A DNA stretch of 63,292 nucleotides, filler included, from Octopus bimaculoides (taxonomy: Eukaryota): NCBI RefSeq assembly GCF_001194135.2. It is 4 parts of 4 records of this genome, joined end to end, with 100 filler letters (N's around TTAATTAATTAA, not from the genome) between each part and the next. Parts side by side here need not be neighbours in the genome. Positions count along the whole stretch, not along the records: positions 25,111 to 47,053 come from NC_068982.1; 3 more parts are not named here. The stretch is one strand, 5' to 3'. This document shows, piece by piece, positions 26,503 through 45,505 of the stretch. The translations under genes were made by a program, and so were the position numbers. The notes beneath the pieces were generated by a model. It did not search any database, was not told the DNA's origin, and worked only from the letters and a program-made list of their open reading frames with translations. How positions within the stretch are numbered: position 1 is the first letter of the stretch; the number at the start of each line of letters is the position of its first letter.

Positions 26503-26559
26503 CTATGAAGCAACTTTTTTCATGATTATGGTGCTGGTAAGTCCTTTATAGTTCACTTT
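26503..26559 (-). CDS. FABP-like gene, terminal exon 4: KVNYKGLTSTIIMKKVAS*
   Basis: Acceptor tatgttattcctccattttAG, phase 0; YKGLTST resembles FABP4 MKGVTSTRVY; TAG stop followed by AATAAA and a T-rich downstream tract. Confidence 0.82.
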   Translation of the reverse strand, partial: KVNYKGLTSTIIMKKVAS

Positions 26560-26684
26560 CTAAAATGGAGGAATAACATATCAATTAGTAAATGGTAACA
26601 TTTTGTATGATATTGTAGAAAATAATCGATGAGAAAACAGAACTGAAATATACATTAAAAGTAGAGACAGCACAAGGACAGCAA

Positions 26685-26860
26685 TTTCGGGGGTAAATCG
26701 ATTACACCGACACCAGTGCTTGACTGGTACTTATTTTATCGACCCCGAAAAGATGAAAGACAACGTCGACCTCGGTGGAATTTAAACTTAGAACGCGGAT
26801 GAAATACCGCTAAGTATTTTGCCCGCTTTGCTAACGATTCTACCAGCTCGCTGCCTTGTT
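26685..26860 (-). mobile_element. tRNA-derived SINE (second family)
   Basis: Reverse strand ggcagcgagctggtagaatcgttagc A-box-like and gtttaaattcc B-box-like; homologous to 29940-30137. Confidence 0.7.
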
Positions 26861-27169
26861 AAGCGTAGAGATATTAATAAATATACAACTGGAATGTATT
26901 TACATATACGTACACATTAATATAGTTATTTCTGTTGAAGACTCGATCTGAGCATTGTTAAATAACGAAACGCACGTGAATTCTATACTGTGTGTATTTA
27001 GATAGCGGGTAGTATCTATAGAAAACCCGATAAACTATGCTAATGATGCTATTGACCATAGCTACAATGAAAGAAGACGAAATGCTGACCCTCTGCCCTC
27101 GATTGGTTGTACAATGCCCTGTTGAATCGGATATTTGTAGCTCTGACAGGCAGGAAAGAAGGTAATGAT

Positions 27170-27280
27170 GACTCACAAGGCTTTGGCTGGTCCGGAGCTA
27201 TTATAGAAAACACTTGCCCATAGTGACACGCAGTGGGCTGAACCCAGAACCATGTGACTGGGAAGCAAATTTCTTGTCAC
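27170..27280 (-). mobile_element. SINE 5' fragment (same family as 4990-5365)
   Basis: cacaaggctttggctgg..cacttgccc..gaaccatgtgactgggaagcaa. Confidence 0.65.
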
Positions 27281-28844
27281 GTAGATACGGCCCCCAAAAC
27301 ATATTGCTTCCGATACTAGATTGGTTCTTATTGACCGATGCAGGTTGAGAATCAAAATCTAAATCAAATTCTAAAATAATGTATTTAAATACTGCGAAGA
27401 GTCATGAGTCAAAAGTCTTGAGTCATGCCCGTGATTTTTAAGTCACAACATTCTGAGATCTCTAAAAACGGACGCAATATATTAACTTTCTGACGAAATA
27501 TAACATAAGGAACGAAAGGAAGAATGGATTCCAAACTAGCCAAATATATAATAGAGCAAAACAAAGTAGTTAAGCGTTAGCATCTTACCCAATTATTTGT
27601 CATGTCCATTATTACATTTAAGCGATAGTTTCTTTTAAGATACCTGCCAGGAACCAATGATCAAAGACATCTTACGCTTACGACTGATCTAGATTGACTG
27701 TAGGCTTACGAGCACTAGATCTGCTACCACATTGTTCTATGATGTATGATCTGAAGAGGGTATTATTTTGGCAAGGTTTCTGCAAGCCCGAATACTACTA
27801 ATGGCACATTGACCAAAACTTCAATTCTGCATTTATCAGTTATTATGCATAAAAATTATTCATTATATCACCCTAAATCTATCTATAACTTGGCTCGCAT
27901 AATAGGAATGTTCTCAATGTGTTCTCCGCAATGGTACAACCTTAACGGGTGAACAAATATGGCGTATTGGAACAGAGAAGATCATACAGTTTAGTAATTT
28001 GTCTCTAAGTAGCTTCCCTATGTCTCTCACCTTAATATAGTAATGTGGGTATTTAGTACCACCCCATATATTCGTGAAAAGCCAATTTATTCGGCTTTAA
28101 AGCTCATTTCTCGCCAAACAGATCGGTAAAGTATTGCTGAAAGACTGTATTTATCAGTTTAGAATTTCTTACCACGATCAAATTTCAGTCGACGTGAAAT
28201 CTACATTGTGAGTTTTTGGTTACTTTGTTCTATGAAATCTGTTTTACCGAGCGGTTTTCGTAAACTTGAGTTTTAGAGCTCACACTTTAGTATAAACATG
28301 CAACATTCATGTTAAGTGTTGAATAAACTTTCAAGAACCATTTCCGCTACCAGTATGTCGTTGTAATACTTTTTTTTCAAGCCTCAGTCTATGAACTTAT
28401 TCACTCTGTAATCTAGCGTTTTCTATCTGTAGTTCTTTATTAAAACTAAGCAATTCTAATTCAAGTCTTTGAATCTTCCTAGCCATTTATTGCTGATAAT
28501 GAATTCCATCAATTCCTGCTTCACGGATCTCCTAATCTAGCTATTGTAGTTCTTTTTTCGTGTCGGAAACGACAAATTCATTTTCTAGTAGTTGATCCCT
28601 GTTTAAAGTCATATTGTAGTTGTTTGTACAGATCATAAACTTTGCTCATGTATAATCCAAAACTTTATTAGACTTCTATCAGACAAGTAGAACAGGTTTA
28701 AGGGGGTTTTACGATCTTTTTGAATTGCTTCTGCTACATTTTTATATATTGGGAGAATCGTTTCCTCCGACATTACCTTCTGAGTTACAAGCCTGCCAAC
28801 TCGTTACCTTAACAACAACAACAACAGCAACAATAATAATAATA

Positions 28845-43075: not shown

Positions 43076-43098
43076 ATCAGTTTAAGTATATATTCATA

Positions 43099-43572
43099 AA
43101 ATTTGGCTGAAATTGATGGGTGCGCGTTTGGCCTAATCGATGTGCAAGGAGCCGCGTAAGCGTTGATTTGTGGGTTTGATTATGGCTTGGGTTAGCTCAT
43201 CATTTTTCGGTCATTTGTTTGTATTTAAAAATTGTCGCTTCAAATTGGAGAATATATATTATTATGATATATTATTATATTGTTATTATTATATTATGAC
43301 CCTACCATAGTTGCTTTCGATCCGTAACTTCCTGGTTTGTTTATAAATATTGTATGTAGTATTAGACAGATTAAGTATATATCCATTAATTTTGGCTGAA
43401 ACTGATGGTCGAGCGTTTGGCCAAATCGGATGCACAAAGGGCCGTGTAAGCGTTGATTTGTGAGTTCGATTCTGGCTGGGCTCAGCTCATCAGTTTTTGC
43501 TCATTTGTTTGTATTTAAAAATTATCGCTTAAAATCGGAGAATATATGCTATCATGAAATATTATTATACAG
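43099..43572 (+). repeat. Direct repeat of an about 185-bp unit (period about 288 bp) containing a decayed tRNA-like sequence
   Basis: Units start near 43099 and 43388; A-box tggccaaatcgg (43418) and B-box gagttcgattct (43462) in copy 2. Confidence 0.6.
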
Positions 43573-43574
43573 TT

Positions 43575-43790
43575 ATGTCCTGTTATTCTGTTGTTTGTTT
43601 CAATCATTAGACTGTGGCCATGCCGGAGCACCGCCTTAAAAGGTTTTAGTCGAAGAAATCGACTCCAGGACTTATTCTCTATAAGTCTAGTACTTATTCC
43701 ATCGGTCTCATTTTGCTGCACCACTAGTTTCGGGGACGTAAACACACTAACATCAGTTGTTAAGCGATGGTGGGGGATAAAGACAAACAC
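43575..43790 (-). mobile_element. SINE 3' half (family of 4990-5365)
   Basis: gactgtggccatgccggagcaccgcc..gtcgaagaaatcgac..gtacttatt..; further copies at 44760-44930 (+) and 58585-58790 (-). Confidence 0.65.
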
Positions 43791-45432
43791 TAACACACAA
43801 ATAGATACACGCACATATATCTATACGACGGTATTCTTTCAGTTTCCATCTACCAAATCCACTCACAAAGATGATAGAAGTGCCGCGGTATAACCAGAGC
43901 CCACATGCTGAAACTAGCAAAAAACTAAAAGTGTGTGTATTTGTGTGTGTGTGTGTGTGTGTGTGTGTGTGTGCACGTGTGCGGGCGCGTGGCATGTATG
44001 CGTGTGTGTGTATGTGCATGTGCATGTGTGTATATGTACGTATATATGGCCGCAGTCCAGCGATTAAAACAAGTATAAAAATAAAGCGTATACACACACA
44101 CACACATACACACACACACACACACACACACACACACACACACGTACACAAACACACACACATTTTACAGAAAATAAAAAAAGTAAATTTCGAGTGCAGT
44201 AAAGCTGTAAGAACAGCAGAGAAAGATTGAGTATTTACCATTATGAGACGGGAAAAGGTTGCTAGGAGGCGGTTACGGGAACCGAACCTGTGCCCATCAG
44301 ATAGTTAGATAGATAGATAGATAGATAGATAGATAGATAGATAAATAGACAGATAGATAGATTGATATATCCTTTGTAGCAATAATTCGTGTCAGAACCC
44401 CTGCCATCCCCTTTTCCTCATTTCTTTTGCAAACACTGTCCGGCTGCAGTTCTTGTTATGCATCAACCACAGTAACCTCACCAAACTGAAAAGAACATGC
44501 AAATTGTCTTGGGTACTGTACCATCTGCACACTGACCAATATAAGACTGGTTTACTTTAAGCTGCAAAACACTTGTTCTGAGCATTTTAGGAAAAAACGT
44601 TAATAAAATAAAATACTTAAAAAATCTTTACAAATATAAAGTATCATAATATTGCCCTTACACGTAGCATCCATAACAGTTTGCAAGTGCCACAAAAGTT
44701 ATCCATTTCTATATATATATATCAATCAATCAATATTCATTATTCAAAATTCATGAGCACTGTACTCCCAGTTCAGCAAAAGTGACCAACAGAATAAGTA
44801 CCAGACCTAGCAAAAAATTTAAGTGCTGGGATCGATTCATTCAGCTAAAAATTTTTCAAGGCGGTGCCCTAGCATGGCTGCAATATAATGACTGAAACAA
44901 GTGAAAGATAAAAAAAAAGATAAAAGAATACACACACACACACACACACACACACACACACACACACACACACACACACACACACACATACACACACACA
45001 CACACACACATATGTAGATAGATAAATAGATAGAGAGATAGATAGACAGACAGACAGATAGATAGATAGATAGATAGATAGATAGATAGATAGATAGATA
45101 GATAGATATGTCTTCTGTTGAAAGCATCTGTGTTGCGACACTGATTGGCTTTGCAAGCACTGACCAGGTAAAATCATAATGTCAAACAGCTGCTGTAATG
45201 TCACCAAATTAGGAAGACATGCAAATGACATGAGCACTGTACCGTTTACACGGACTGATAAAAAATCTAGGATCTCTAATTAGATCACACCTAGGATCAA
45301 AACTTCAAATTGCATAGCATTCTAGAGCATTCTACCAAAAACAGAAATGTTTCAATAAAAAAAGAAACCCCCGACCAACCTCTACAAATATACAAATATA
45401 ATAAAAATATATTAATGTAATATTTTCCTTAC

Positions 45433-45505
45433 TGGTAGCATCCATGACAGCTTTCATATTTTCTGCTTTACCTTCTTGCTTCCATGTACCAAAAAAGTTG
45501 TCCAT
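45433..45505 (-). CDS. FABP/iLBP-like (calycin) gene, coding exon 1: MDNFFGTWKQEGKAENMKAVMDAT + phase-1 base
   Basis: FxGTWK...EN..M motif of the FABP N-terminus; tcaaaATG start context; 73 nt coding length, the same as vertebrate FABP3/4/7 exon 1; donor A|GTAAGG; TATA box about 70 nt upstream. Confidence 0.85.

Follow-up and report, generated by a model that had tools for sequence, protein, structure and literature searches.

The window considered here is a stretch of 63,292 nucleotides (nt) of DNA from Octopus bimaculoides. In the piece of it at 25111-47053 (NC_068982.1; G+C content 36.8%), four minus-strand exons were found that make up the gene LOC106867166. Its product of 140 amino acids (aa) is securely placed in the intracellular lipid-binding protein (iLBP)/fatty acid-binding protein (FABP) superfamily of calycins, and carries Tyr, Ile, and Met at the positions of the carboxylate-binding triad Arg106, Arg126, and Tyr128. 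We incline to the view that this protein is a cytosolic carrier that would hold its ligand mainly through hydrophobic contacts.

Gene Structure and Transcription

All features of the gene lie on the minus strand, and all three introns are of the GT..AG type, with phases 1/0/0. A TATA box (TATATAAAA; 45592-45600), placed by motif and kept in sequence in O. sinensis, precedes exon 1 (45433-45559), which comprises a 5' untranslated region (UTR) of approximately 49-54 nt, codons 1-24, and the first base of codon 25; its coding part spans 45433-45505 (73 nt), with the ATG at 45505 and the donor GTAAGG after 45433. Intron 1 (31459-45432; 13,974 nt), bridged by spliced reads, leads to exon 2 (31277-31458; 182 nt), which encodes helix II and strands B-E of the predicted fold. 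Intron 2 (31108-31276) is only 169 nt long and is followed by exon 3 (30997-31107; 111 nt), encoding strands F-I and holding Y112, and by intron 3 (26560-30996; 4,437 nt). Exon 4 (26426-26559) supplies the last 18 codons, including I133 and M135, in a coding part of 57 nt that includes the TAG (26503-26559; stop at 26503-26505), together with a 3' UTR of approximately 70 nt, in which the motif AATAAA marks the polyadenylation signal (26444-26449). The coding total of 423 nt gives 140 aa, a translation identical to the protein reported in a preliminary description of this DNA.

Transcription was assessed with three raw RNA-seq runs from O. bimaculoides, approximately 6% of each being read, with reads mapped to three short stretches surrounding the exons. 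Depth was approximately 600-1000 over exons (400-1000 for exon 1) versus 0-10 over introns. The junction between exons 3 and 2 (31107 to 31277) was crossed by 485, 584, and 706 reads in the three runs; 563-854 reads per run passed 31458 from exon 2 into the 3' end of exon 1, and 211-288 per run passed 26560 from exon 4 into the 3' end of exon 3. The contig piece covering exon 1 (45433-45566) had a loose end corresponding to the start of exon 2, and a single RNA contig of 554 nt joined 45566-45433, 31458-31277, 31107-30997, and 26560-26433 with zero mismatches. RNA 5' ends fell at 45554/45559, 33-46 nt downstream of the TATA box, and RNA 3' ends at approximately 26426-26438, 6-18 nt downstream of AATAAA. 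LOC106867166 is a TATA-driven four-exon gene with an abundant, cleanly spliced mRNA of approximately 0.55 kb. The exons, splice sites, phases, and 140-aa product given in the preliminary description proved exact to the base in both sequence and RNA, all three junctions being present in spliced reads and in the contig, and the TATA box and AATAAA that it proposed are consistent with the RNA start cluster and the RNA ends found near them.

A chance assembly of open reading frame (ORF) fragments, or a pseudogene, would account for the missing Pfam match reported below and for nothing else. It is refuted by the hundreds of spliced reads at every junction and the full-length contig; moreover, RefSeq contains a model whose sequence matches the product exactly, and orthologs share the gene structure. 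We give this possibility practically no credence.

The assembly contains N gaps at 38316-38431, 40989-41325, and 42683-42901, all three of which lie within intron 1 and affect no codon or reading frame. Coding exons concealed by these gaps were considered and ruled out, because neither the RNA reads nor the gap-free O. sinensis ortholog shows any; intron 1 of the latter (12,141 nt) contains no additional coding exon, just a decayed copy of exon 1.

The RNA differed from the assembly at 26580 in intron 3 (A>G, in all three runs) and at 45626, upstream of the TATA box (C>T, in one run); both differences are likely polymorphisms. A (GA)n/(CT)n tract in intron 2 (31160-31200) showed heavy RNA depth with many chimeric loose ends from other transcripts, and the tract is no part of the LOC106867166 mRNA. 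Spliced exons 2-3 (30997-31458) were also encountered with 0-1 mismatches in runs X30, X32, X33, and X39, whose labels name three other organisms and, for a metatranscriptome, "termite gut metagenome"; carry-over or mislabeling of an abundant octopus transcript is the apparent cause.

Annotation Status

The gene had been presented as hidden. This is not so, because an exact-sequence look-up found the identical protein in RefSeq as XP_014767447.1, "uncharacterized protein LOC106867166 isoform X1", from O. bimaculoides. LOC106867166 is annotated there, yet it is unnamed and has no family assignment. It also has no UniProt entry of the A0A0L8 type, whereas the neighboring octopus FABP genes have one, which suggests that the first genome annotation overlooked it. 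Searches for literature on the locus, the protein, and UniProt identifiers found none.

RefSeq isoform X2 (XP_014767455.1) combines exons 1-2 of LOC106867166 with exons 3-4 of a tandem downstream paralog that lies outside the piece (O. bimaculoides chromosome record, L004 40843-62495). The assembly has no exon 2 for the paralog itself, and the locus includes 16.5 kb of N. Reads of the X2 form numbered 3, 10, and 0 in the three runs, compared with 485-706 for the main junction. Because the two genes share 95-97.5% identity over the final 40 nt of exon 2, these rare reads can be attributed to the paralog's own transcripts. Isoform X2 was thus rejected as a case of real alternative 3' exons; XP_014767455.1 is probably an annotation chimera.

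Family Membership

The single 140-aa sequence had no match in Pfam (at E <= 10) or NCBIfam scans, and a phmmer search of the PDB yielded the nematode protein As-p18 (6I8X) as its sole match, full length but marginal (E = 0.003). By contrast, a family profile built from the six closest proteins matched more than 100 FABP/CRABP chains in the PDB over their full length, with myelin P2 at the top (E = 8e-8) and CRABP1, FABP9, and FABP4 among the others. Comparison with a canonical Arg-x-Tyr FABP profile in hhalign gave 99.7% probability (E = 1.4e-25). The profile searches proposed in the preliminary description thus failed for the lone sequence in Pfam and succeeded at the level of the family.

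Structure prediction, proposed there as a further check, likewise returned a FABP barrel. The AlphaFold2 model (predicted local distance difference test (pLDDT) score 94; predicted template modeling score (pTM) 0.86) contains ten strands (6-10, 40-47, 50-58, 61-68, 73-77, 83-92, 95-101, 108-116, 119-126, and 129-137) and two helices (17-23 and 29-37), which form a helix-turn-helix between strands A and B. The model of the O. sinensis ortholog (pLDDT 89) likewise has ten strands and a helix-turn-helix. In Foldseek searches, both models superposed on EgFABP1, ReP1-NCXSQ, P2, FABP4/7/9, and Sm14 with template modeling (TM) scores of 0.83-0.86 and a root-mean-square deviation (rmsd) of approximately 2 A; for the LOC106867166 model, TM was 0.84-0.86 to EgFABP1, ReP1-NCXSQ, P2, and FABP4.

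Gene structure leads to the same placement. Coding exon sizes of 73/182/111/57 nt and phases 1/0/0 recur in five relatives with readable loci, and vertebrate FABP genes have four exons with coding parts of 73/173/102/51 nt and phases 1/0/0. The G-x-W motif (G6-T7-W8) is invariant across the octopod clade to which the protein belongs. The N-terminus (MDNFFGTWKQEGK) is hydrophilic, with no signal peptide by sequence inspection, and the protein as a whole is acidic (isoelectric point (pI) 4.8). Because profile, fold, and exon structure agree, membership in the iLBP/FABP superfamily is secure, and the original identification of a FABP-like four-exon gene holds.

The Carboxylate-Binding Triad and the Predicted Cavity

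Four independent alignments were compared: the phmmer alignment to As-p18, the profile alignment to P2, a 51-sequence MAFFT alignment with human references, and the hhalign alignment. The P2 numbering was checked against mutant names in the PDB list. All four alignments place Y112 opposite R106, I133 opposite R126, and M135 opposite Y128, with no alternative Arg or Tyr available for these positions; the absence of the triad, first noted by eye, is thus upheld. The protein contains just two Arg residues. Judging by its aligned position, R46 appears to lie toward the bottom end of the barrel, outside the cavity, and R82 aligns with R78 of FABP4. In the R106 column, the clade has six Tyr and one Phe, compared with Arg in five of six nearest relatives and Arg or Lys in 25 of 32 other homologs. 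None of the seven clade members has a basic residue in either the Arg106 or the Arg126 column.

The triad had also been invoked as a general rule for iLBPs, and this holds in part. It is valid for the FABP3/4/5/7/8/9 and CRABP branches, and the 140-aa protein does not have the signature of subfamily IV FABPs (FABP3/4/5/7/8/9/12 type) and CRABPs (Arg106, Arg126-x-Tyr128). The rule breaks down for the CRBPs, L-FABP, and the ileal bile acid-binding protein (BABP), whose reference sequences have no triad in the MAFFT alignment, as is also known generally, and for the nearest octopus paralogs, which have no R126/Y128. Loss of the triad therefore has precedents in the superfamily, and its absence does not show that the ligand is a non-carboxylate, as had been proposed.

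Mapping of the cavity by alignment to FABP4 alone assigns to it a predominantly hydrophobic set of residues, putatively M17, M21, M35, M38, F42, M53, F80, F84, F88, W122, Y126, I133, and M135. The only polar candidates predicted by the same map are H55, K64, R82, E98, and Y112. Among these, R82 occupies a position that is Arg or Lys in six of the seven clade members and Tyr in one Argonauta copy.

Relatives and Distribution

High-scoring named relatives came only from O. bimaculoides, O. sinensis, O. vulgaris, and Argonauta hians, and the wider alignments of the homolog search contained no named relatives outside octopods. The nearest outgroups are the octopus "liver-like" FABP XP_014781267, LOC106877000, LOC106871251, and two proteins from transcriptome assemblies; a decapodiform sister clade is thus compatible with the data. 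These outgroup relatives do not have R126/Y128, and R106 is kept in five of six. The picture that emerges from the alignments is one of stepwise anchor loss in the cephalopod "liver-like" FABP lineage, in which R126/Y128 would have been lost first, followed by replacement of R106 with Tyr (Phe in one copy). The subfamily, which is tandemly duplicated and fast-evolving and among named species was found only in octopods, appears to branch from the cephalopod "liver-like" (Lipocalin_7-type) FABPs.

O. sinensis has two tandem genes approximately 19 kb apart, and O. bimaculoides has the same pair. Three adjacent genes of the clade are found in Argonauta, and the annotation of O. vulgaris includes no fewer than four distinct 140-aa variants. 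In the latter, 13 consecutively numbered models on OX597815.1 (CAI9717669-CAI9717681) represent four 140-aa variants, two N-terminally truncated ones, and the second paralog; this set suggests either local amplification or many transcript models of one locus. A "FABP/lipocalin" gene has been reported as a consistent flank of the octopod-specific venom "SF1" toxin gene arrays (bioRxiv 10.64898/2026.02.02.703354). This flanking gene is probably one of the annotated liver-like FABPs and not LOC106867166.

Proposed Function and Alternative Explanations

The overall explanation that we prefer, with more confidence than any rival but well short of certainty, is that LOC106867166 encodes a cytosolic iLBP carrier of a hydrophobic small molecule whose fatty acid anchors were lost stepwise. 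Met, Phe, Trp, and Tyr would abound in the cavity and hold the ligand there, chiefly by hydrophobic contacts; any polar head group would form a hydrogen bond with Y112, which takes the position of Gln108 in CRBP. H55, K64, R82, or E98 may contribute to the contact with the head group. A carboxylate could not be held in the manner of FABP4, because there is no buried Arg; the predicted binding mode would thus resemble that of CRBP or L-FABP rather than the Arg-Arg-Tyr salt bridge of FABP4. Such a mode would favor ligands that are neutral or bulky, or else fatty acids oriented with the head outward. Of these, a neutral-head ligand bonded by Y112 is favored on our analysis over a fatty acid whose head would face the portal and meet R82, K64, or solvent.

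Several observations weigh against this explanation, beginning with those that concern the ligand. A buried Arg is not indispensable for fatty acid binding, as illustrated by the second fatty acid of L-FABP and by Arg mutants of I-FABP and A-FABP, and alternative anchoring could be provided by R82 and K64. The protein might then be an ordinary fatty acid carrier, its carboxylate held by R82, K64, or H55 or exposed to solvent at the portal, like that of the second fatty acid in L-FABP. Both R82, with the basic character noted above, and K64 map to the cavity; the nearest relatives bear liver-type FABP annotations; and iLBPs are promiscuous in general. Arguing the other way are the total absence of basic residues from both canonical anchor positions in the clade, the replacement of R82 by Tyr in an Argonauta copy, and the acidity of the protein. 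We regard an ordinary fatty acid carrier as a possible but rather doubtful alternative.

The same residues admit a bolder proposal, in which the octopod-only clade, having no buried cationic anchor at all, has switched from fatty acids to another class of cargo, such as a sterol, a retinoid, a pigment precursor, or a lipid amide. In this specific form the proposal is tentative, and we would not bet on it. If it were true, a lineage-specific change of cargo would have taken place in a highly expressed cytosolic carrier. If the ligand is not a fatty acid, the protein would also provide an entry point into lipid or pigment biology specific to octopods.

Further counter-evidence concerns constraint on the sequence. 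Between the O. bimaculoides and O. sinensis orthologs, the ratio of nonsynonymous to synonymous substitution rates (dN/dS) is 0.75, and neutrality is not rejected (p = 0.52); the coding sequence is 91.3% identical, which is similar to the 89-93% of the introns. Changes between the orthologs fall on cavity-mapped positions (6 of 28) as often as on the remaining ones (18 of 112). With the orthologs near neutrality and cavity sites changing like the rest, functional constraint may recently have been relaxed. The missing Pfam match belongs on the same side of the balance.

These figures, with the cavity conserved no better than the rest of the protein and a copy number that differs between species, would suit relaxed constraint or a ligand-independent role (e.g., structural, buffering, or protein interaction), in which case the loss of the triad would reflect lost lipid binding. 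Against this stand a dN/dS of approximately 0.45 among paralogs, significantly below 1 (p < 0.001), an mRNA with strong expression and clean splicing, and a fold prediction of very high confidence. Moreover, the ORF is intact in all copies and the exon structure is identical from Argonauta to Octopus; the family is thus maintained, yet fast-evolving. In the deepest comparisons, where dS is saturated, dN/dS is approximately 0.2. We consider relaxed constraint or a ligand-independent role improbable.

The results also bear on annotation. They supply a fold and a family name for "uncharacterized proteins" of Octopus and Argonauta in RefSeq and UniProt that Pfam misses, and they make a stepwise loss of the fatty acid anchors visible within cephalopod FABPs.

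Other Elements at the Locus

Intron 1 contains a degraded non-LTR retrotransposon, a long interspersed nuclear element (LINE) fragment (35849-38480, minus strand), in the same orientation as the gene. Its ORFs encode a reverse transcriptase (RVT_1, E = 9e-27) and an endonuclease (Exo_endo_phos_2, E = 3e-6), and it is disrupted by frameshifts and by the N gap at 38316-38431. Approximately 800 nt into the same intron lies a decayed duplicate of exon 1 (MDNFCGTCK...; 44650-44706, minus strand), which has suffered a deletion of approximately 28 nt. The O. sinensis duplicate (L001 10881-10955) retains its ORF and has lost the GT donor. Its presence in both species makes the duplication older than the split between O. 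bimaculoides and O. sinensis. The duplicate is not used, because the true exon 1 is matched at 99% by the loose ends of the RNA reads at 31458. A fourth N gap (46075-46440) lies upstream of the promoter, between (AC)n and (TA)n microsatellites, and the piece as a whole is abundant in di-, tri-, and tetranucleotide repeats.

Comparison With Known Systems

The closest relatives outside the clade are the octopus proteins annotated as "fatty acid-binding protein, liver-like" (XP_014781267.1, LOC106877000, and LOC106871251; Lipocalin_7, PF14651), which match the clade profile with E = 1e-12 to 1e-18. They resemble the LOC106867166 protein in length, carry the same motifs (EP.ES.D.FG+KFK and TE(W)), and likewise have no R126/Y128; their genes lie on the same chromosome as the clade genes in both O. 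bimaculoides and O. vulgaris, approximately 22 Mb away for the O. vulgaris copy. However, identity is merely 26-33%, and most of them retain Arg at the R106 position. They also reach or approach the Pfam threshold, whereas the LOC106867166 protein has no Lipocalin_7 match and one Argonauta copy scores 13.8 bits against a cutoff of 25.4. The anchors of FABP1, Arg122 and Ser124, which typify the liver-type/ileal BABP branch, correspond to I133 and M135.

Among solved structures, the best matches are myelin P2/FABP8, FABP4, FABP9, and the CRABPs (profile E = 8e-8; TM 0.84, rmsd 2.0 A), which have in common with LOC106867166 the G-x-W start and a four-exon gene with phases 1/0/0. Their identity to the octopus protein is 19-26%, and they carry the triad where it has Y112/I133/M135. 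The squid protein ReP1-NCXSQ (PDB 3PPT), another iLBP from a cephalopod, ranks second among the structural matches (TM 0.84). It is nevertheless a canonical Arg/Tyr fatty acid binder (its Y128F mutant is 3PP6) from a different branch, and its 19% identity bears out the distance ascribed to it in the preliminary description. As-p18, to which similarity is marginal, differs from the LOC106867166 protein in being secreted, in having extra loops, and in keeping Arg-x-Tyr.

CRBP1/RBP1 is the closest analogy for the possible role of Y112, although it shows no specific sequence relationship. It has no buried Arg, and its neutral Gln108, at the R106 position, hydrogen-bonds the hydroxyl of its ligand. 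The CRBP pair that contacts the retinol hydroxyl, Gln108 and Lys40, has Y112 and F42 as its counterparts. Should the ligand of the octopod proteins prove not to be a fatty acid, they would represent a further independent retuning of the FABP barrel, like that of CRBP. Rather than being a new kind of system, LOC106867166 belongs to a well-known family, of which it is a divergent member restricted to one lineage, and it offers both an improvement in annotation and a candidate for binding assays.

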